This document shows positions 8,116-20,349 of a DNA stretch of 20,349 bases, in pieces. A program made the translations under genes and the position numbers. The notes beneath the pieces were generated by a model. That model did no database searches and was not told the origin of the DNA. It saw only the letters and a program-made list of their open reading frames with translations. Within the stretch, counting starts at the first letter, position 1, and every line of letters starts with the position of its first letter. This DNA is from Octopus sinensis (Eukaryota), in contig NW_021824005.1 in the NCBI RefSeq assembly GCF_006345805.1, positions 1 through 20,349 of the forward strand. The letters run 5' to 3'.

Positions 8116-8447
8116 CAGTGGTTCTCAGCCATGCTGTATATATGACTCCCGGGGAAGTTGGGAGAGGCTCTATAAGCCTTTTTGGGGAGTCCACGCAAGC
8201 AAAATTAAACTGGGGAATCACAGAAGTGTTTGAAGGATCAATGAAAAATATTCTGTTTCAAGTGTATTTCTTGTAAGAAACAGCTAAATTTCTTTCCCTG
8301 ACGTTTTACATGGTTCAAACTACACAAGTGAATGTGTGACAACAAAATAGGAATTTTGGAAGAAGTATCTATAAAATTAGTTATTAAACACATTGAGTGG
8401 CGGTTGGAGTGGGGTCCACCAGAATAAAATAATAATTAAAGGGGTCC
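8116..8447 (+). mobile_element. Probable hAT/Charlie-type non-autonomous DNA transposon, one-end fragment
   Basis: Starts CAGTGGTTCTCAGCC, resembling the Charlie TIR CAGTGGTTCTCAA(A/C)C. No matching opposite TIR was found. Confidence 0.4.
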
Positions 8448-8469
8448 CTTTTACCTTTATTCTTGTTTT

Positions 8470-8655
8470 TATCATTTGATTGCAGCCATGCTGGTGTACT
8501 GGCTTGAAGGGTTTTAGGGTTTTAGTCAAACAAACGACCACGGGACTTATTTCTTAAGCATACTGCTTATTCTGTCAACCTCTTTTGCTAAATCACTAAG
8601 TTCTGGAGATGTAAACACACCAGCACCGGTTGTCAAATGGTGATGAGGGAGGGGG
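8470..8655. mobile_element. Octopus-type SINE-like interspersed repeat (third family), ending in a CA-rich tail
   Basis: tcatttgattgcagccatgctgg...gatgtaaacacaccagcaccggttgtcaa followed by (CA)n. Recognised as a common octopus repeat; a short related piece lies at about 6425-6450. Confidence 0.55.
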
Positions 8656-8720
8656 CACGCACATACACACCACCCACACATCCACACACACCCATACATA
8701 CATATATATGTGTGTGTGTG

Positions 8721-8758
<38 letters not shown>

Positions 8759-8762
<4 letters not shown>

Positions 8763-9321
8763 TTGTCCGGAAAATTGTTGCCGATTTTTAAAGGAAAGAA
8801 AAAGGTCAATAAATACCTGCCATTACATTTTTAATCATCCAATATGAACCATTTTGTTGTAAGATGCGTCTCCATCTTCCCTTTAACTTGAAAATACCCT
8901 CTTCCCAGAAATGAGGTGGTTTCATGGCAAAGAATTCATCAAGGTATCTTTTTACATCATCAAAGGAATTGAAATTTTTACCATTAGGACTATTCTGCAG
9001 AGACCTGAATAAGTGAAAATCCGAAGGAGTAATATCTGGGGGAATATGGAGGGTGGAGTAACACGTCCCAGCCGAGCTGCAGGAATTGTTGTCTGGTTCC
9101 CAAAGCATCAAGTGTCGAAAATGAACTTTCTTATCTTCCATTTCAAAGGGTTACAGAATTAATACAGGTTATAGGAACATAAACATTCTTCCACGAAAAG
9201 ATAGCTTAAAGTGTGCTCTAAATGGAGGTGTAGTCAAATCCTATTTTATGGACGCAACCATATTCGAAAATAAGTCGAAATATAAGCTACTATAAATCAG
9301 CATGAACTTTCCAGACAACCC

Positions 9322-9322
<1 letters not shown>
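8759..9322 (-). mobile_element. Internally deleted mariner (Tc1/mariner) element
   Basis: Imperfect TIRs of about 30 bp (ttggttgtccggaaaattgttgccgattt / aaatcagcatgaactttccagacaaccca) with TA flanks. The minus strand encodes the transposase C-terminus PDITPSDFHLFRSLQNS..GKNF..W..GI.KL..RW (SPDLAPSD-like third-Asp motif). Confidence 0.9.
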
Positions 9323-9390
<68 letters not shown>

Positions 9391-9397
9391 TATATAT

Positions 9398-9556
9398 ATT
9401 ATATTATATTAAATTAGAGATAAAACCACTATTAGTCAAATAAAACAGTGAAAAACATAAGTCAATACGTAAAATTGATTTAAAAATATAAAAGTTAAAA
9501 ATTAAAAGATTATTTAAATAATTTAAATTTATAAATTTTAAATATGTATATATACA

Positions 9557-9589
<33 letters not shown>

Positions 9590-9983
9590 ATTTTTATATT
9601 TATATATTATTTTATTTATTAATTAATTTATTTATTTATTTATTTTATTTTTTATATAAATATCAAAAGTATTAAAAGTTTAATGAAAGATAAAGACTAA
9701 ACTTTTAATACGTTTGATATTTACATAAAAATAAATTTTTTTAAATAAATAAATAAATAATTAATTAATTAATTAATTAATTAAATAATATATAAATATA
9801 TAATATACATACATATATATATATGTATATTTGTATATATATATATTTAAAATTTATAAATTTAAATTATTTAAATAATTTTTTCAGTTTTAACTTTTAT
9901 ATTTTTAAATTAATTTTATGTATTGGCTTATGTTTTTCACTGTTTTATTTGCCTAATAGTGGTTTTATCTCTAATTTAATATA

Positions 9984-9990
<7 letters not shown>
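9398..9990. repeat. 593-bp AT-rich foldback palindrome
   Basis: 9398-9682 is a near-exact reverse complement of 9698-9990, with a 15-nt spacer atgaaagataaagac (9683-9697). Flanked by (TA)n. Confidence 0.9.
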
Positions 9991-10053
<63 letters not shown>

Positions 10054-10579
10054 TACACACACACACATATATATATGTATATATACATACACACACACAC
10101 ACACATATATATATATATCTTATATAGATAGATAGACAGATAGATAGATGGATAGATAGATTGATAGATATAGATATAGATATAGGTATATATATAGATG
10201 TATATATAGATATAAGATCTAAGGATTGAGGTTTAGGAGGAAAAGTTGGCTTCAAGCAATGCGTAGTAAATAGAAAAACAACTTTCAGGAACAATGGTTT
10301 GTTGAGACAGAAGGTTTTGGATTATTTTTGTTATCGAAGTTTGATGAATTGGAAAAAGTTCTTTTTATATTTCATGGTAGTCAACCAGGGTTGCCGTAAT
10401 GAATGCAGCAGTACAATTTGTACCTGCAAACATCAATCACTAAAACTATTCTCACAATACAAATAACAACATCTCCACTCAGCCTTTTTCCCCTAACCTT
10501 CTCAAATTTTCCTTCTTATTTCAATACTAAAAGAATTTTGTTTTTCAATTTATCATACTTGAATACGAAAAAATTCACA

Positions 10580-12400
10580 ACCTTCCATCTCCCATTTTGA
10601 GACTGACTACCCTTGGAAGCTTAAAAGTTTTCCGTTTTGGAACTACTTCTAGCAATTTCTTATGTTTTCTTTTATTTTTACAGGTAATCCTTGGTTCACT
10701 GATATTTTTGTGGAGTCGGCACATCAAAAATATAGTAAAGAACTTCCATGGGTACTTCTTTCCTTGTAACCCTTTCTTCAGCAAACCCCTTTTAGCTGAT
10801 TTATGTCTTTTACATTCCCATTTTGAACCTTACACCATGTACATGATTTTACCAATCCGTTTCATTATTATGCCATCTTCCTAACCTTCTTTTCTATTTC
10901 TGTACACTCTGAAAAACACCTTATCACCAGTTTTTAAATACTTGGTCATATTTTTAGTGCTTTCCCTGGCTTTTACTTTTCTTCCAGATAATAACTTGTC
11001 AAAGCTGACGTAATTTTTCTTGCCAAGGTCAGTTCAGCAGGCAACATGCCTGAAGCGGTATTTGCGTTTTGTGTTACACAGTAAATGCTCAGGAATAGTT
11101 GCAATGTTACATCATCCACTACCTCATTTCTGGATTTCCTCAGCTTATCTGTTCGATCTTGGGTAACCCAGAGAAGTAGTGATATGCTTAATTGAGAGTG
11201 TCTTGCAAAATCTCTTAAATTCACTTGCAATAAATTGTTTACCATTATCAGGAGATCATGGTGCCCGGAACACCACACTTTGCAAAATGTTCGTGTAGTA
11301 AATCCACTGTTACTGTGGAGGTCAGTTTTCTACATTTATCCATTTCTGGCCATTTTGTAAAACTATATACCCCTATTAGATAATAAGATCCATTTAATAG
11401 TCCTGCTAAATTTATGGTGTAGCCTAGTCCATGGAAAATCAGTCTTGGGCAAAGATCGAAATTTTGAAGGTGGTGACTTTGCTGCAAGAGCACAGCCTCT
11501 GCAGGATTTTACCAGCTTCTCGATATCTAGATCTACTTTTGGCCAGTACAGATAACTACTACTAAGTGACTTCATTCGAGAAATTCCTGAATGTCTAGTG
11601 TGGAATTCCCTTAACATTTGATCTTGTAATGAGGCAGGCACTACGATCATCTGTGCATACATAAGCACATTATCACATATCAAACACAAGTTCAAAACTG
11701 TGTTTCATCCAACAAAACACATTTTTCATTTGTTTCTTCTGATCTCTCTATTTTTTCATTTTCATAATAAACTCATCCATCTCCGCCTTAATTTTTATTT
11801 CATCCAATATGATAGGTAATTCATGCACAACATTGCATAATATACCTTTTATTCCATTTTCGGCTCTTAACGCCACTATCACTGTGTCTCCTAGTGGTTC
11901 ACTATATTTTAGTATTAAACCTCAACAAACTATCTGAATGTACCTATTTTTTAGACAGCAAATACTCCATTTTTAAGTCATGATTCCCTAAGATCATTCC
12001 CCAGCATTGCATTCTGTTGGCTGCATGTGTGGGAATACAATTTTTTACCCATAGATTGATAATAATGGGTGGTGGTCTGTCTGCAAGCAGAATTGTCTTC
12101 CAAGGATAAATTTATGGAATTTCATTACCACAAATATGATGGCTAATTCTTCCTTCTCTATTTGACTGTAAATTTTCTCAGCCAGAAATAAGGAATGCAT
12201 GAGCTACAGCTTTCATGCTAGCATCTTCATAATTGTGTAAATTCACAGCTCCAATACCATTTTCACTAGTGTCTGATGCCACTACCGTTTGTAAATTCGG
12301 GTCAAAATGTGATAATGAGAATTCTGACATTAAGAAATTTCTTCCAAAGCTTCTTGGTACTTGTCTGACCAGTTTCACTTAAATACTCTTATAAGTCGAT
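10580..12400 (-). pseudogene. Decayed Gypsy/Ty3 (Mag-like) pol: RNase H linker, integrase zinc finger and integrase core
   Basis: Frameshifted fragments: LSHFDPNLQTVVASDTSENGIGAV (RNase H start); H..H.GISRMK.L..SYLYWP..D.DIE..VKSC..C (HHCC); FTKWPE..FAKCGVPGTMIS (integrase core); Y..T.N..T..G..PAEL. Many stops and frameshifts. Confidence 0.9.
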
Positions 12401-12974
12401 ACTGTTTTCTCCTGTGTTAGCAGTGCTATTAAATCACATGTTAAAGTCATCTCTAAAGATTTCCTTAAGAAATTATAGCCAGCACTCATTTGCTTCAGAT
12501 ACGAAACGTCATAACAAACCACTGCTGGTTACAATTTCTCCTGAAAATCTAAAATGATAACCGTAACAAGCTCTTACTTTTGTTTCCAGTCATACTAATC
12601 TTTTTTGGTTTCAGTTTCAAAGATGTAAAGAAAACTTCCAAGATATCCGGCACGACCATTACTCATTTTACTCTTGATCTAACAAAATCAGTTCCTTGAT
12701 TAATTAACAATCTATCTGGGACACGAGCAATTCAACAGCAGAATCCTCAACGACTTCTTCGAACCCTCCATCATTTGCAAGTGTCCCATCACCTAAGTTT
12801 GATGTAGAATTTGTTCTTGTGGAAAATTTATAGAATTTTATTTTTCTAAGCATCATACATAGTTGAGGGTCCCACTTTATCCCATGACACAACAATTATC
12901 TCTTCTGTTTATCTTCACCAGAATTCCAGCTTTTGAAAATTCAGAAAGACGAAAGAAATTTCTAAATTATCAGT

Positions 12975-13154
12975 ATGGCAACACCATATCGATTACCCCC
13001 CAATTACATGAGACATCAAGGCAATTCTGGCAGACACTTTGTTGGACGACATTATGAGAGGGAAGAACTGAAGATCTTGATCAAGGATGAAGATACTCAA
13101 ATAATACAAGTTTATGGACTGCCTTATGTTGGCAAAACAAGTCTTGTGAAAACT
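12975..13154 (+). CDS. STAND/NB-ARC NTPase gene, first coding exon (P-loop)
   Basis: Acceptor tcttctgtttatcttcaccag at 12921; in-frame stop TAA at 12963; ATG 12975 in agtATGG context. Encodes LPP..FVGR..E..L and Walker A GLPYVGKT (13116-13139). Donor GTAAGA at 13155, phase 0. Confidence 0.85.
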
Positions 13155-13483
13155 GTAAGAAATTTACTATTGTTTTCTCTTTTCTTTACGTTAACCTTAT
13201 TGCATTTTGCCTTTCTGTAGGTTATTAGGGATCCTTGAGGTTTTACAGTTAAGTTACTGACTAAAGAGAAAAGCATTTCTTGTTCAATCCCATACAATGG
13301 CAGTCACTGAAGTCTTTGTACCGTTTGGTGAGTTGATGGTTGACCTATGATCAAAGGTATTTCTCCTGTAACCATTCTGTCTATGGCAATGATCATATTA
13401 TTTAATGTATCCTGTCCTATGTTATGAAGAAGATGGGCAGTTTGAGAGAAGTTTGACTGCTTTATATATTATGTATGTAAGTG

Positions 13484-13925
13484 AGTGGGTAGGTAGATAG
13501 GTAGGTAGGTAGGTAGGTAGGTAGACAGGCAGGTAGACAGGCAGGTAGGTATGTAGGTAGGTAGGTAGGTAGGTAGGTAGGTAGTTAGGTAGTTAGTTAG
13601 GTAGGTAGGTAGGTAGGTAGATAGGTAGGTAAGTAGGTAGACAGTTAGGTAGATAGGTAGGTATGTATGTATGTAGGTAGGCAGGTAGGTAGGTAGATAG
13701 GTAGGTAGGTAGGTAGGTAGGTAGGTAAGTAGGTAGGTAGGTAGGTAGGTAGGTATATAGGTAGGTATGTAGTTAGGTTGGTAGGTAAGTAGGTAGGCAG
13801 TTAGGTAGATAGGTATGTATGTATGTATGTATGTATGTAGGTAGGTAGGTAGGTAGGTAGGTAGGTAGGTAGGTAGGTAGGTAGGTAGGTAGGTAGGTAG
13901 GTATGTAAGTATGTAGGTAGGCAGA
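13484..13925. repeat. Intronic (GGTA)n compound microsatellite
   Basis: Directly visible; it is the source of the spurious YLPT ORFs. Confidence 0.95.
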
Positions 13926-14070
13926 CAGGTGTGTATATGTGTGTTTGTGTGTGTCTGTATGTTTGCATCTCCTCGGCTTGACATTGTAGATTTCTTGTAA
14001 ATGAATGTCGTTAACTTCCAATATTCCATGGAAATTTCCTATAGAGAAATATTTCCTTGGAAACAAGTAA

Positions 14071-14310
14071 GTTTGGTGTCAGGGGGGCATCTGGCTGTAG
14101 AGGGTCTGCCAGTTTGACTGAAAACTGGTAAGCTGGGGAGATTCACCAGGTTCCACTCTAATTTGTCATGGTTTCTACAGATGGGTGCCCCTCCTAACAC
14201 CAACCACTGCAAGAGTGTAAGGGGTGTTTTTCACGTGCCAGTTACGAAACACCAGCATCAGCCCTGACTACGACCTCACTTGACTTGACAGATCTTCTCA
14301 AGCACAAGAA
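14071..14310. mobile_element. Interspersed repeat remnants with an inverted pair of the ggatgcccttcctaac motif
   Basis: 14071-14101 is approximately the reverse complement of 14174-14205. Confidence 0.55.
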
Positions 14311-14659
14311 TAATTGATTGATAGACAGAGAGTGAGAGAGATGTAGATGAAATAAGAGATGGATAGTAAAAGAGATGAAGCAACTGTGTAATTAATAGAA
14401 AGATAATTAAAGAGATAGAATGGCAAAGTGACAAACTGTTATCCAGAAAGATACTTAGACAAACTGTAAGATGAATATGAAGGAATATAAAGGATACCCT
14501 GAACTAATGCATAGACAAAAGAATAGACAAAGAAACAGTTATTGAGAGGGAGTAATAAAGTCAGACAGAGAAAGAGAAAAACTGAGAGACCAATAAAATG
14601 ATAAGTGAATCTATGGAAATCTTTGAACTTGTTCTAATGTTATGTTTCTAATATGACAG

Positions 14660-15685
14660 GTCTGTCAAGAATTGAAGGATGAAATCAACCCCGAAAGACT
14701 CCACATAAAACACATCCATATTTCTAATAATAGCAGTTGGTCTGATATTTCCAACATGTACAATACATTCACCAATTGTTCCAGTATCACCAACACGAAA
14801 TGGAAAATTTGTATTTTTGATGATTTCCAGAACATTCAAGAAAGCTTCCTTCCAGGTTTCCAGGAGCTTTGCGACAATGACTTTTCACTGCACAGAAATC
14901 TAAAAATCATTCTCATTTTAAGTGGTGGAAAACCATTTCAGTTTGATAGAATCAGATTTGCAGAGTGTAAAGTGAGTCCATTGTCCATTAAAGATGCCCA
15001 GCTTCTTTTCGGTCGCTGTTCAGACATTGAGACGGATGATGAGAACAAAGAACAAATACACAACATCATCAGATATGCCTGTGGCCTGCCAGGACTTCTT
15101 ATTTACTTTGCAGAAAAATTCTCCCAGTTTCGTCATAATTTCTCTTTTAATGATATCTACAAAATGATTTGTGATGAAACCAAGCTCAATGACTGGCTGG
15201 ACGAATGTACAATTAACAGACGTAATATCAAACAAGAAATGGACAAGTACTTTTCTCAACTCTCTCACGAACAGCAAGAAGCTCTCAAAGTGCTTTCATA
15301 TTTTCCTGGAAGATTTGGTATTGAGGAAGCTGTTGAAATGACTGGTTCTTCTAGTCAACCAGCTTCCAAGATGCATGTTTTGATGCCACTTGTGGAGCAA
15401 GGTTTGATCAGTTCAGATTTAGAATTACAGTATTTCCAAGTACAAGAATTAATACGTGCAATTACTAAACAACAGATTGACAATGTACACAGCAATGATT
15501 TGGTAAAGCTCAAATATACAAACATTATTGGGAAAAGTCTGATGAAGGCTCAAGATATTTATGATAAAGGCCTCATATATGAAGCACTCGGAATAATGAA
15601 CAACAACTGGGAAAATATTTCGTTTCTGATGAAGAAAGGGATTGATGCACCCTCAGATGGTAGGACATATGGAGTTTATTATGAG
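14660..15685 (+). CDS. STAND/NB-ARC NTPase gene, second coding exon (rest of NB-ARC, winged helix, start of helical repeats)
   Basis: Acceptor ..gacag at 14659 joins in phase 0 to give GKTSLVKT|VCQEL. 342 stop-free codons contain kinase-2 ICIFDD (14807-14824), sensor-1 strand KIILILS, RNBS-C PLSIKDAQLLF, CGLPGLL (15080-15100), LS..QQ.AL..LSYFP..F, LVEQGLI and an MHD-position VQELIR. Donor GTAAGA at 15686, phase 0. Confidence 0.9.
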
Positions 15686-15861
15686 GTAAGATATTTTGTC
15701 CTTAACAACGTGTCTTGTATCTTGTGTTGTAAGTCAGTCTTTCATATGTCGCATTTTCGTTTAACCTGAGTTACATCTTCCCACATCTTTACCATTGGTT
15801 CTCAATTGAGGGCCATATGGCCCATGGAGGTCCATATAAGAGTTTGCATGCACATCCAAAA

Positions 15862-16320
15862 CTTGCCATTCACCAGTTCCCCGTTCGCCTGTCATATGCA
15901 GTGACTATCAGTAAATCACAACAGAAGACTTTTAATAAAATGGGGCTATTCTTACCTGAACCTGTATTCAGCCATGGCCAGGTATATGCTGTCAGGTATA
16001 AGGTGGCGAGCTGGCAGAAACGTCAGCACGCCGGACGAAATGCTTAGCCATATTTCGTCTGCCGTTACGTTCTTGGTTCAAATTCCGCCGAGGTCGACTT
16101 TGCCTTTCATCCTTTCGGGGTCGATAAATCAAGTACCAGTTACGCACTGGGGTCAATGTAATCGACTTAATCCGTTTGTCTGTCCTTGTTTGTCCCCTCT
16201 GTGTTTAGCCCCTTGTGGGTAGTAAAAGAAATAGGTCAGGTATATGCTGCATTCTCAAGGGCTTGCAAATGATCTGATGTGAAACTTAAAGTTATCAACA
16301 CTGACAAAGAAGGGAAAAGT
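15862..16320 (+). pseudogene. Helitron/PIF1 helicase C-terminal fragment (motifs V-VI), split by a SINE
   Basis: QFPVRLSYAVTISKSQQKTF..GLFLPEPVFSHGQVYA|AFSR after removing the SINE, matching QFP.RLA.A.TINKSQGQT...FSHGQLYVA.SR. Confidence 0.85.
15992..16236 (+). mobile_element. tRNA-derived SINE (same family as 1950-2180) with TSD
   Basis: B-box gttcaaattcc; exact 13-bp TSD caggtatatgctg at 15979-15991 and 16237-16249. Confidence 0.9.
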
Positions 16321-16349
16321 AGTAGAAAGAATTATTATTATTATTATTA

Positions 16350-16382
<33 letters not shown>

Positions 16383-16482
16383 TCCCTGGGGCAGAAAAGA
16401 TTTGAAATCATTAATATTTTTCATAAAAACGTTGATTTCAAATTTTGCTACAAGGCCAGCAATTTGTGGGAAGAGGAAAATT

Positions 16483-16565
16483 GATTTGAACTCAGAACAC
16501 GAAGGCAGACAAAATGCCACCAAGCATTCTGTTTAGTGTGCTAATGGTTCTGCCAGCTCACCACA
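16483..16565 (-). mobile_element. Older, diverged SINE head fragment of the same superfamily
   Basis: The reverse complement gtggtgagctggcagaaccattagcac...gttctgagttcaaatc aligns with 16001-16085. Confidence 0.7.
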
Positions 16566-16615
16566 TTATTTCTACAGACAAAATATTAACACATGTTACT
16601 GTCTTTGTCTTTTAG

Positions 16616-16772
16616 ATAACATTAAAAGCCTCAGATATACTGATGCTATGTCACCCTAGAGATTCAAGACAGTTTTTCCAAGCATGTCTACAAAACTCCC
16701 TGTTATTTGGTAATGAAGAAGAACAAGCTCTTATGAATATAGCATATGGTGTATCATTGACAGATTTACCAG
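16616..16772 (+). CDS. STAND/NB-ARC NTPase gene, third coding exon (TPR-like helices)
   Basis: Acceptor tgtctttgtcttttag at 16615; phase 0 matches exon 2. Open frame ITLKASDILMLCHPRDSRQFFQACLQNSLLFGNEEEQALMNIAYGVSLTDLP has a TPR-like pattern. Donor AG|GTATGA at 16773, phase 1. Confidence 0.75.
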
Positions 16773-17282
16773 GTATGATATGACGATGGTGTGTAGATTT
16801 TGTCATCCCACTGATGTAGATAATATGCTTAACAGGAATGTTGAGCATTTAGCACCATTTTTTGTATATTTTGCTAAATACTGAAGAGGTGTTTACGAGA
16901 TTATATAATGTTTCTAAAAGCAATTACGTAATACTAGCAGTAATTTACCAAAATACGTGTATGTTTCATAAAGCATGATTTCTATACTTTATTAACATTC
17001 TATACATATATCCATACATGCATGCTCCCATCCCTATATATGTATGTACATAAACATTTGGAAGGCAGCTCCTTGAGCAACCTTCTTTGTCCGATAACCT
17101 TGAACACATGACCAAAGAAGTCATAATTTTAAAACATACTTAGGTCAGACACAAATGTGAATCATATTAATTCTGCAGGAGCTGGTATGAATTTTTTCAG
17201 AGGGATCTGAGGGGGTGACCAGGGAAATTTTTCTGAAACTGGATGATTTGATATGGAATAACCCATATACATATATATTCAT

Positions 17283-17473
<191 letters not shown>

Positions 17474-17577
17474 CTAGCAGAATTGCCCGGCGATGCTCGG
17501 GGCTGAATTGCTTGAAAGTACTGTTAATGATTGCACTGAATTATGATGATTATTCAGGCAAATATCGATATAAGTTT

Positions 17578-18330
17578 ACGGTGGGAGATAAGGACTTAAC
17601 GATCAAACGTGTGCCATTGCATTGTTTTGGGGGAACCAAATTTCTATAGGGGCACCAACTTTAAGTTTGAGAATGTGTGGTGGTAGTCCGGTGGGCTCAA
17701 AGGAATTGAGTACCTCTATTGGATAGTTGATGACGTCCTCTGGGTCAGGAGTTGTATCGATAGACTTATATACATAGACATCCCCAGGAATGAGTTTTAG
17801 CATTTCATCATTAATATGGTGAACAGTTTTATTCCTCGGGGCCAGAATAGCCCTTTGGCCAATCCAATCCATATTCTGATAATTAGCTTGTAGATCTGGG
17901 AACACTGCATCTCTGAGATCAGAAGGCGTTTTAACAATGGTACAAATGGAATCGATGGCAATATTACCATTTTCATCCCCTGGTATTTTGCCTTCGCCAA
18001 GTGCAAGGAGGGTGTGAGAAAATGCTGCTGATGTGATATTATGTCGCATATAAACACGCATATTGGTGTGAAATTTGAGAATCTTCACCAGTGGCCACAA
18101 TGTGGATGACTTAAGACACGCACTTACTGCATCAGTTCTAGTCCCTTTGGGAATAACGGGAAGTGTTTGTCGGAAGTCCCCTGAAAGAAGAAGTGTTATG
18201 CCTCCCATGGGAGCTGAAGAGTGTTTGATGTCTCTGAGCGATCTATCTAGTGCCTCAAGAGCACCTCTGTGGGCCATCGTGCATTCATCCCAAACGATAA
18301 GCTTGCATCGTCCAATTTTAAAACAATAAC
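17578..18330 (-). pseudogene. Helitron PIF1-family helicase fragment
   Basis: IVWDECTMAHRGALEALDRSLRDI...GG..LLLSGDFRQTLPV (motifs II-III), RAILAPRN, LPPH.L.LKVGAPI, then a frameshift to RNL.PPKQCNGTRL. Confidence 0.9.
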
Positions 18331-18542
18331 CAAAGCCCCTTCTCCAAAAGGGGGAGGGTTACGGTTTACAATTATTTAACAAATGCAACACAACAACGTT
18401 TCCCTGACGAGGAACCAACAAACGTGATTACAATAGTCAAACAGTAATAATAATAACAACAAACCTTTTTAATGTATCCCCATTTATGTGAAACCACTTA
18501 TTCAAGTTCAAGTCATTGATGCAATTTTATACGAATTGCTAA

Positions 18543-19417
18543 TACACACACACATAATAAGGGTGAAAAATTGAATATTAAGTTGATTAATATGAATTGA
18601 AAACCAGTGGTGTAGCATATAAGACCATAGCGGATCTTCTTGTAGCAAAAAGGATGACCAGTATTAATTGCTCATCCCTTTTATATAAATACTTTCACTT
18701 TAATTGTTGCACACTTGCAAAGAGAAAGGAGGAGAAAGTGTAGTGGTAATGGTAGGAGTGAAGCACTTGAAATGAAAGAGGGAAATCGTAAAATATTAAG
18801 TTTTCTCGAATTTTTTCTTAATTGGGTGTGAAATTGAAAAAAACTTTACATGCCATGACCCAATGGATTCTACTTTGAAAAATGATAGGTAAATTCCAAT
18901 TGAATAAATTCTATATTGCAGAATTGTATAAAAAAACGAACGGTTTGGGAGGCAGAGAAAATCTGCCTTTTATCATAAGAGATACACACACACATAATAA
19001 GGGTGAAAAATTGAATATTAATTTGATTAATATGAATTGAAAACCAGTGGTGTAGCATATAAGACCATAGCGGATCTTCTAGCAAAAAGGATGACCAGTA
19101 TTAATTGCTCATCCCTTTTATATAAATACATTCACTTTAATTGTTGCACACTTGCAAAGAGAAAGGTGGAGAAAGTGTAGTGGTAATGGTAGGAGTGAAG
19201 CACTTGAACTGAAAGAGGGAAATCGTAAAATATTGAGTTTTCTCGAATTTTTTCTTAATTGGGGGTGAAATTGAAAAAACTTTACATGCCATGACCCAAT
19301 GGATTCTACTTAGAAAAATTATAGGTAAATTCCAATTGAAGAATTTCTGTATTGTAGAATTGTGTAAAAAACGAACGGTTTGGGAGGCAGAGAAAATCTG
19401 CATTTTATCATAAGAGA
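18543..19417 (-). repeat. Tandem duplication of the Helitron 5' terminal segment (440 + 435 bp)
   Basis: 18543-18982 and 18983-19417 are highly similar. Each starts with TCTCTTATGATAAAA and a GCAGA-TTTTC-TCTGC hairpin on the minus strand. Confidence 0.9.
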
Positions 19418-19429
19418 TGCATTGAGTAC

Positions 19430-19830
19430 TGTTCTCACTTATGGGCAGGTGCTCCTGCAGATTGTTTCACTCTGTTGGGCTGCATTCGATGCTGTATTCA
19501 TATTCTATTGGTCCTGATCTATCTTCTAAATTGGATTCACTCTCTCATCGTCATCATGTGGGTCTTCCTTGTCCCTTTTCTATAAGTATTTCCATAGACA
19601 TTGTTCAGCTGAGCTCTCCTCTCTGGTTCCTCCTCCAAGAACTTATCACCGATCAACCAGACTTGTATCCATCAGTATCCCGTGCAACCTCCTAAGCGCC
19701 GTAAAGCCCTTTACAGAACCAGTTTCTTCCCTCACGCCTCTGAACTTTGGAATTCCCTTCCACAGTCTTCTTTTCCGCTTTAATATGTCCTTCAGTCTTT
19801 TAAGTCTAATGTACATCTTCACCTATTGAC
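19430..19830 (+). pseudogene. CR1/L2/Jockey-group LINE ORF2 3' end fragment
   Basis: Frameshifted WAGAPA..; IG..LSSKLDSLSHR; LFYKYFHRHCS.ELSSLVPP....RSTRL; SFFP....LWNSLP....FKS.V. This is a typical post-RT C-terminus. Confidence 0.8.
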
Positions 19831-20010
19831 TTCTGTCTGGTGTCCATTTTATTCTAGTAACTCTTAGGTTTTCAGTGCTCTAAGGATCCTGTAATTAGTG
19901 AATGCTTTAAAAAAAGAAAATACATACATATATATTTGTATATATAAATGGATGAATAAATTATCCTTTGTTTACTGTTAACATGGAAAATGTTGAGATA
20001 GGTTCTCTTT

Positions 20011-20093
20011 CTTTCCTGATGAGAAGATTGTAATTGACACCGTTTATTCCTTTGGAATAAAACCAATGTTGTCTTCGAAACATATGTCGATAG
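20011..20093 (+). ncRNA. Type I hammerhead ribozyme motif (minimal, palindromic stem III), homolog of 546-625
   Basis: Stem I ctttc 20011-20015 / gatag 20089-20093 (one mismatch); CTGATGA 20016-20022; stem II gaagat/gtcttc with an inner tttattcc-ttt-ggaataaa hairpin; GAAA 20077-20080; palindrome ACATATGT 20080-20087; GTC with cleavage after C20088. Confidence 0.75.
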
Positions 20094-20167
20094 TAAAAGA
20101 ATTTGAATAGCATCTGCATTCAACTTCATTTATTTACTTGTATTTGTATATATGTATACATATACGA

Positions 20168-20327
20168 TGGGCTTTTTTCAGTTTCTTTCAACCAGATCCA
20201 CTCATAAGGCTTTGGCCAGCCTAAGGCTATAGCAAAAGACACCTGTCCAAAGTGTAATGCAGTGGGGCAGAACTCAGAACCCTTTGGTTGAGCAGGAATG
20301 TTCTTACCACACAACCATGTCGGAGCC
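20168..20327 (-). mobile_element. tRNA-derived SINE (fourth family), 5' part
   Basis: Minus-strand head ggctccgacatggttgtgtggtaagaac..gggttctgagttc, then a CORE-like ..tttggacaggtgtctt. Recognised as an octopus-type SINE. Confidence 0.6.
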
Positions 20328-20349
20328 TTTTAATGAATAATTGATGATA

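Follow-up and report, generated by a model that had tools for sequence, protein, structure and literature searches.

The window analysed here, a stretch of 20,349 bp that makes up the entire unplaced scaffold C476 of Octopus sinensis, carries on its forward strand (12975–16772) the three 5′ exons of a ten-exon gene, LOC115226970, and the identity of this gene and its protein is close to certain. The gene belongs to a tandem array in which at least 14 copies, pseudogenes included, lie head to tail. The encoded protein consists of a nucleotide-binding domain (NBD), a helical domain, a winged helix, a helical arm, about ten helix pairs that resemble tetratricopeptide repeats (TPRs) and a short cysteine-containing tail, with no recognizable effector domain at either end. 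Motifs, profile searches and predicted folds make it very likely that the nucleoside triphosphatase (NTPase) is a signal-transduction ATPase with numerous domains (STAND) of the NB-ARC/AP-ATPase type. The best overall explanation, which we hold to be probable though well short of secure, is an effector-less NB-ARC–TPR gene of a tandem array that serves as an intracellular immune or non-self sensor.

Gene structure and the encoded protein

As read from the sequence, coding exon 1 (12975–13154; 60 codons) runs from the ATG at 12975 to the donor 13154/GTAAGA and encodes residues 1–60 of the product: a 21-residue disordered N-terminus, FVGRHYERE and GLPYVGKT. The probable 5′ untranslated region (5′ UTR) part of this exon occupies 12922–12974; its TAA, the ATG and both AG dinucleotides that are candidate acceptors are kept in four paralogous copies. 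Intron 1 (13155–14659, GT…AG), with a (GGTA)n microsatellite at 13488–13921, is followed by exon 2 (14660–15685; 342 codons), which has the borders ACAG/GTC at 14660 and GAG/GTAAGA at 15685, is in phase 0 on both sides and extends from Walker B to the winged helix and the start of the helical arm. The acceptor and donor of exon 2, with open frames, are kept in eight distinct paralogs. Beyond intron 2 (15686–16615, GT…AG) lies exon 3 (16616–16772; 52 codons and one base), bordered by TTTTAG/ATA at 16616 and CAG/GTATGA at 16772, with phase 1 at the closing donor; it encodes three helices of the arm or TPR-like solenoid. Joined in frame through these GT–AG sites, the three exons give a product of 454 amino acids that is identical at every residue to RefSeq entries XP_029653752.1/XP_029653784.1 (here P0001; ‘uncharacterized protein LOC115226970, partial’). 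The NCBI gene predictor therefore picked the same junctions independently, and these are the joins (13154/14660 and 15685/16616, with their phases) that had been proposed in an earlier, sequence-only reading of the window.

That reading had given 12922–16772 as the gene. The three exons are as it described them, but they are not the whole gene: the scaffold stops within intron 3, the 5′ part of which (16773–20349) harbours a fragment of a PIF1-like helicase on the minus strand (17603–18358). A tblastn search of 16773–20349 with the TPR part of the protein found no TPR exons, so the window does not conceal the 3′ exons. Positions 8390–20349 of the window are 99.2% identical to scaffold C2724:3–12005, on which exon 4 follows ∼570 bp past the point where the window ends and the tenth exon is at 22097–22414. 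This copy, LOC115227430, encodes 858 amino acids and adds seven exons to the three of the window. Scaffold C766 is a third match, with 97.6% identity and the reverse orientation. In O. sinensis and O. vulgaris taken together, eight full copies share the ten-exon layout.

Exon 3 had been read as TPR-like. In the AlphaFold2 model of the 454 residues (mean predicted local distance difference test, pLDDT, 87.4; predicted template-modelling score, pTM, 0.82) its helices (394–414, 416–433 and 436–451) do have the look of a helical repeat, but neither exon 3 nor P0001 has a Pfam TPR match, and the detectable TPR_12 units are encoded in exons beyond the window. Full-length paralogs have 856–858 amino acids. 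One of them, P0080, matches TPR_12 with 63.7 bits (threshold 30.1), which bears out the earlier statement that the repeats are TPR-like rather than WD40 and that the gene is therefore no Apaf-1 orthologue. The model of P0080 (pLDDT 85.5, pTM 0.75) has unbroken helix pairs over residues ∼340–800 and then a short tail; its best full-length fold match is PH0952 (E = 1.5e-10), with SAMD9 next at a low template-modelling (TM) score. A C-terminal effector was considered and rejected: Pfam assigns the last exon to no family and gives just a chance-level match to NBD94, and all that is kept of the tail across octopods is a CxxC, with no clear zinc-finger pattern.

The tandem array and the candidate function

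In the O. sinensis genome there are 14 close copies of exon 2, ten of them at 3.9–4.3 Mb of the chromosome-scale contig C23 and four on unplaced scaffolds, and two divergent copies besides (on C26 and C12701). A syntenic array occupies 42.18–42.62 Mb of one O. vulgaris chromosome. The head-to-tail arrangement is visible in the window itself, since the last exon of an upstream tandem paralog lies at 1333–1653 on the plus strand (106 codons and TAA; acceptor ttacttctAG), 81–87% identical by tblastn to the last exon of P0080, P0004 and P0085; the scaffold spans the junction of two tandem units, with ∼11.3 kb of intergenic DNA between them. Divergent members of the superfamily are found at C26:14047475–14048338, C12701:708–7902 and C24:27058683–27058952, with 29–34% identity in exon 2; the C12701 member shares the exon boundaries and is 70–72% identical in exons 3–4 to the transcript-derived P0086. 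PF00931 gave no match when run against the octopus genome, but this six-frame, exon-by-exon search is blind to a divergent or finely split NB-ARC, so it does not confirm a separate Apaf-1 gene.

Paralogous proteins are 93% identical in the nucleotide-binding oligomerization domain (NOD); in the TPR region the figure is 80% and goes down to 64% at the lowest. Ratios of nonsynonymous to synonymous substitution rates (dN/dS) were taken from Nei–Gojobori counts summed over the 28 non-independent pairs of the eight full copies, without a significance test. The ratio is 0.44 for the NBD, helical domain 1 and winged-helix domain and 0.19 for the helical arm (residues 336–454); for TPR exons 4–9 one by one it is 0.48, 0.37, 0.70, 0.73, 1.33 and 0.70 (0.68 overall), and for the last exon it is 0.93. 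By these counts the switch module is under purifying selection and the repeat domain evolves faster, a pattern that fits a receptor family without proving diversifying selection. The value for exon 1 is unusable, as this exon is disrupted in two O. vulgaris copies: at L028 2260–2443 and L030 2549–2730 its match falls into two overlapping, frame-shifted pieces, and in L028 codons 36 and 40 are stops. Such disruption probably lies behind the many O. vulgaris and O. bimaculoides models that start at Met93 and lack the P-loop. Exon 9 (residues 665–752) exists in two divergent forms, 71–74% and 92–100% identical to P0080 (e.g. L026 22531–22791 and L030 18523–18786), and last exons can be 100% identical between otherwise different copies; this suggests, from sequence comparison, that copies in the array have undergone gene conversion or have exchanged exons.

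In view of the tandem expansion and the faster evolution of the TPRs, the protein most likely acts as an intracellular immune or non-self sensor. How such a sensor might work is a more tentative matter, and we put the mechanism that follows at a little under an even chance. Apaf-1, the NOD–leucine-rich repeat (LRR) receptors of plants (plant NLRs), MalT and PH0952 suggest, by analogy, that the protein would act as a molecular switch controlled by nucleotide, with the TPR arm keeping the NOD closed. A ligand bound by the variable TPR region would free the NOD, and nucleotide exchange would then drive oligomerization. As the protein has no effector domain, the source of its output would be a partner that the oligomer recruits, hetero-oligomers formed with paralogs (in the sensor/helper style) or the surface of the oligomer itself. 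A more specific version seems to us rather improbable: effector-less bilaterian NB-ARC–TPR proteins that fall below the Pfam thresholds would make up the intracellular immune repertoire of octopods, and paralogs with variable TPRs would form hetero-oligomers among themselves or together with a helper or adaptor from an unlinked locus, in a plant-like network of independent mollusc origin. Weaker still is the variant in which a conserved disordered N-terminal peptide, with PPNY in some copies, would be the recruiting motif.

Several points weigh against this best explanation as a whole. The evidence for the candidate function consists of the structure of the array and of rate heterogeneity. The TPR dN/dS values do not exceed 1 except in one 37-codon exon, which fits relaxed constraint equally well as diversifying selection, and several copies are pseudogenes (three to four of the ten on C23 carry stops or are fragments). 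The copy in the window is truncated by the scaffold end, and at 99.2% identity it may be an allele or an assembly duplicate of LOC115227430. P0001 itself reaches the gathering score of no Pfam NTPase family, NB-ARC included, and its class assignment rests on transitive and structural evidence. The sensor-1 arginine and the MHD residues contact the nucleotide in Apaf-1 and plant NLRs. The former (the ‘TTR’ of RNBS-B) is replaced in the octopod clade, which reads ILILSGGKP at this place; TTR, TSR or STTR is kept in several distant members (P0043, P0044, P0048, P0064 and P0089). The MHD position is VQE in Octopus, with His replaced by Gln, and I-H-G or I-Q-G in relatives. A nearby lysine, Lys151, might stand in for the arginine, and nucleotide hydrolysis or ADP-locking may differ from that of canonical NB-ARC proteins.

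The same gene could instead be a non-immune STAND/TPR scaffold or regulator, its array the result of neutral segmental duplication, which we consider unlikely but worth taking seriously. Models for such a role exist, as nephrocystin-3 serves cilia and MalT serves transcription. Effector and death-fold domains are absent throughout the animal relatives, the TPR_12 units belong to the kinesin-light-chain/NPHP3 type (14 of 38 family members match TPR_NPHP3 below threshold) and the TPR dN/dS is mostly below 1, all of which would suit a scaffold; TPR/WD40 ‘NLRs’ are, moreover, often thought not to recognize pathogen-associated molecular patterns (review, PMC6321704). Housekeeping scaffolds, however, are usually single-copy and conserved, whereas this family combines 14 or more recent copies, some of them pseudogenes, with variability concentrated in the repeats and a patchy, lineage-specific spread, a pattern typical of immune receptor families.

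We give little credence to the idea that the array, or at least the copy in the window, is a decaying duplicate without function, the frames of which are open only because the duplications are young. The copies are indeed close (dS ∼0.07 and dN/dS ∼0.40 in exon 2), stops occur in three to four chromosomal copies in addition to the two disrupted first exons in O. vulgaris, the last exon approaches a dN/dS of 1 and the window copy lies amid retroelement and Helitron debris. Over the 28 pairs, however, the ratios for the NOD (0.4) and the arm are well below 1, eight copies have all ten exons open and their splice sites intact, and the family has been retained across molluscs, echinoderms and hemichordates.

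Class of the NTPase and the missing effector

A HMMER search over 1.84 billion representative proteins gave 55 hits in total. Twenty of the 55 were looked up; their named sources are all animal and all are annotated as ‘uncharacterized’ or ‘hypothetical’. The relatives come from a cephalopod (Argonauta), gastropods (Lottia, Batillaria and Haliotis), bivalves (Pinctada, Saccostrea, Pecten, Solemya and Potamilus), crinoids (Anneissia and Antedon) and a hemichordate (Glandiceps). A bacterial origin or contamination was rejected on the strength of these animal sources; bacterial-type domains (kinase, BTAD or LuxR, N-terminal in each case) are present in three of the most distant, weak hits (E = 1e-4 to 4e-4).

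The motif set listed in the sequence-only reading (FVGR, GxxxxGKT, hhhhDD, PLSxxDAxxLF, GLP and a winged helix) is present in full: FVGRHYERE at residues 22–30, GLPYVGKT at 48–55, ICIFDD at 110–115, PLSIKDAQLLF, CGLPGLL and a winged helix, which is predicted as helices over 263–306 with a hairpin at 310–321 and superposes on CED-4 and Apaf-1. Across the family alignment hhGRExE, Walker A, Walker B (ICIFDD), LxPLSxxDAxxLF and GLPx are conserved, and in the profile search the ARC1 motifs VSPLSIKDAQLLF and CGLPGLL align with the same motifs of Roq1 and ADR1.

The NB-ARC/AP-ATPase class is accepted because of the Pfam matches of relatives, the behaviour of a NOD profile in the PDB and the fold matches of the AlphaFold model. 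A Pfam search with the joined protein, which the earlier reading had put forward as a check, puts it below threshold for every NTPase family: P0001 scores 20.2 bits against NB-ARC (PF00931; gathering score 23.5), covering profile positions 10–79 only, and its scores for ATPase_2 (25.9 bits), AAA_16 (23.5 bits) and NPHP3_N (16.5 bits) are likewise below threshold. The full-length paralog P0080 reaches 15.9 bits against NB-ARC. Scans of single exons gave only weak P-loop matches, NCBIfam and PADLOC only sub-threshold matches (ORC/Cdc6, RuvB, TPR and PDC-S), and phmmer with P0001 against PDB sequences no match, so that a family profile was needed. Relatives do pass the Pfam cut-off, with NB-ARC scores of 26–44 bits (P0028, 43.8; P0031, 37.2; P0040, 34.7; P0043, 33.2; P0029, 32.3) and matches that run through the RNBS-B-to-GLPL part; among the 38 aligned family members, 18 match NB-ARC (E ≤ 0.001) and three, all of them peripheral, match NACHT. 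A profile of the NOD only, run against all PDB sequences, finds Roq1 (3.7e-7), ADR1 (1.4e-6), MLA13, the NRG1-type At5g66900 and Sr35, and then lists PH0952 (an archaeal TPR-STAND protein), Apaf-1 and AfsR. Foldseek with the 454-residue model returns CED-4 (TM 0.54–0.56), NRC2/3, Apaf-1, MalT and ZAR1, followed by ORC/Cdc6 and RuvB. The earlier preference for NB-ARC over NACHT is thereby upheld.

It is very unlikely, in our judgement, that NB-ARC is a misassignment and that the true class is NACHT/NPHP3-like or some other STAND clade. P0001 is weak on several models at once, as just described, and P0064, P0089, P0042 and P0056 do score better on NACHT. These four, however, are peripheral and are either the weakest hits (E = 1e-7 to 5e-4) or were brought in through their TPRs, whereas closer relatives match NB-ARC across the ARC1 part. 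Neither P0001 nor P0080 matches NACHT (PF05729) even at E ≤ 1 or 0.1, no NACHT protein appears in the NOD-only search of the PDB even at E ≤ 10, and the top 50 Foldseek folds include no NACHT structure. Walker B reads FDDFQN, that is hhhhDD and then F/N, and not D-[GAS]-h-D-E, the NACHT pattern that Koonin and Aravind are said to have given in 2000.

The sequence-only reading had also counted 21 residues before FVGR, with an in-frame stop upstream of the ATG, and had concluded that no CARD, Death, TIR or enzymatic domain precedes the NTPase; both statements hold. Phe22 of FVGR follows 21 residues, of which 1–19 have a pLDDT below 50 in the AlphaFold model and are disordered, and the TAA at 12963–12965 lies four codons 5′ of the ATG. 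The better acceptor-like site, ttatcttcaccAG at 12920–21, is just 5′ of 12922; with the TAA downstream of it, this site can add only 5′ UTR, and the weak AG at 12972–73 is the sole candidate acceptor able to add coding sequence. In Argonauta, bivalves, gastropods, crinoids and the hemichordate FxGR is 3–45 residues from the Met, and the relatives P0086 and P0012 (L023–L025), which are intronless, transcript-like contigs, have equally short N-termini with in-frame stops before the ATG. Given these short N-termini, the upstream stops and the disorder of residues 1–19, the missing N-terminal effector is a trait of the family and not a gap in annotation. In the animal relatives the Pfam matches are confined to NTPase and TPR families, with no Death-fold, TIR, kinase or other effector domain in any of them.

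The weak AG had been named as a route to an upstream effector exon, and that real transcripts use it in this way is hardly credible: in the O. vulgaris model P0085 an upstream exon is indeed joined at precisely this point, but the addition is a retrotransposon reverse-transcriptase (RT)-type fragment and the model is probably chimeric, five other gene models begin at the same ATG, the nearest retroelement in the window (pol fragments at 11363–12378, ∼600 bp 5′ of the ATG) is on the opposite strand, and the transcript-like contigs of relatives start after upstream stops. A short N-terminal signalling motif, as in some fungal NLRs, was rejected as a family feature, the 21 residues being unconserved outside Octopus and replaced in relatives by 3–45 unrelated ones. 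A PPNY sequence (PPxY type) is present in the disordered N-terminal peptide at residues 8–12 (12996–13010); other paralogs have PSNY, and it is missing in the Argonauta copies. PPxY-type motifs bind WW domains; the occurrence here is probably coincidental.

Outside the exons of the gene, the window consists of microsatellites and transposon debris. A partner gene inside the repeat unit was rejected, the other open reading frames (ORFs) of the window being of low complexity or transposon fragments. A degenerate long-terminal-repeat retrotransposon pol on the minus strand is recognizable from Integrase_H2C2 (11363–11704, 1.2e-12) and RT_RNaseH (12045–12378, 5.5e-10), and an RT fragment similar to it is the one fused in P0085. 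The PIF1-like helicase fragment in intron 3 (8.8e-32) is probably Helitron-derived. An ORF in intron 2 (15733–16047, plus strand), without a Pfam match, may from its appearance be a C-terminal piece of Pif1; another at 8806–9150 (minus strand), likewise without a Pfam match, may be the C-terminal part of a mariner-type transposase. The (GGTA)n microsatellite of intron 1, with ∼108 units, accounts for a GC-skew spike (0.5) at 13–14.5 kb and for long minus-strand ‘TYLP’ pseudo-ORFs. The intergenic segment 9001–10500 is very AT-rich (GC 18%).

Comparison with known systems

The family is already in RefSeq, only as ‘uncharacterized’, and its architecture is known elsewhere, so this is not a new kind of system. 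Our literature search found no paper on this NB-ARC–TPR family in cephalopods, and the reviews of cephalopod immunity that it found make no mention of a cephalopod NB-ARC or NLR repertoire. Cephalopod innate immunity is poorly mapped, and an array that combines a conserved switch with TPRs that evolve faster offers a concrete candidate for intracellular sensing that can be put to the test. Because the family lies under the Pfam thresholds for both NB-ARC and NACHT, surveys that count domains may miss it.

Apaf-1, CED-4 and Dark provide the best structural matches to the NOD (TM 0.54–0.56 for CED-4 and 0.51 for Apaf-1) and share hhGRExE, Walker A and B, GLPx and the winged helix with it. The octopus protein differs from them in having no CARD, in carrying TPRs instead of WD40 repeats, in the replacement of the sensor-1 Arg and the MHD His and in overall sequence (∼11–14% identity). 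An Apaf-1 orthologue was rejected in view of the 21-residue disordered N-terminus in place of a CARD, the TPRs and the copy number of at least 14. CARD-less ‘Apaf-1-like’ proteins have been noted across metazoans (PMC10959488). A canonical NACHT-LRR NLR was likewise rejected, as there is no PF05729 match, Walker B is FDDFQN and the repeats are TPRs rather than LRRs; sponge-centred work sets proteins of the present kind apart from bona fide NACHT-LRR NLRs (PMC3879445). Nephrocystin-3-type NACHT-TPR proteins resemble the octopus protein in having a P-loop NOD followed by TPR_12-type repeats, and matches to NPHP3_N and TPR_NPHP3 do occur below threshold, but the evidence on the octopus NOD favours NB-ARC.

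Among prokaryotic STAND proteins, PH0952 (PDB entry 6mfv) and MalT, with their TPR/SUPR sensors, have the same order of NOD, arm and TPR as the octopus protein, and UniProt labels the octopus paralogs ‘MalT-like TPR region’ domain-containing. PH0952 is the best full-length fold, although the full-length TM-scores are low (0.28–0.36) and the sequences are distant; MalT differs in its DNA-binding effector. Plant NLRs (Roq1, ADR1, MLA13, Sr35, ZAR1 and NRC) are the best profile matches in the PDB, from Walker B through GLPL to the start of ARC2. They have tandem arrays and a variable repeat domain in common with the octopus family, and their sensor/helper logic is a possible analogy; their repeats are LRRs and they carry coiled-coil, TIR or RPW8 executioners at the N-terminus, whereas the octopus family has TPRs and no executioner. 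That an effector is absent family-wide raises the question of how the signal leaves such a receptor.

Fungal NB-ARC-TPR NLRs have the same combination of NOD and repeats and are common (PMC4986451); some fungal NLRs are reported to carry no more than a short motif at the N-terminus and to pass their signal to an effector that is a protein of its own (PMC4986451; bioRxiv 10.1101/2020.01.06.895854). In the octopus genes, conservation of the 21 N-terminal residues goes no further than Octopus, and the repeat unit shows no gene for a partner. The NB-ARC/NACHT-TPR proteins described from Hydra and Acropora, which are often expanded and clustered and are of unknown function (PMC7642931), and from Trichoplax (PMC6321704) come close to the octopus family in their NOD and TPRs and in their lineage-specific expansion. 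These cnidarian and placozoan proteins commonly have Death, DED, CARD or TIR N-termini and are detected by Pfam, whereas the octopus family is effector-less and sub-threshold. It adds a protostome and deuterostome-invertebrate branch to an NB-ARC–TPR architecture that has been discussed mainly for cnidarians, placozoans, fungi and prokaryotes.

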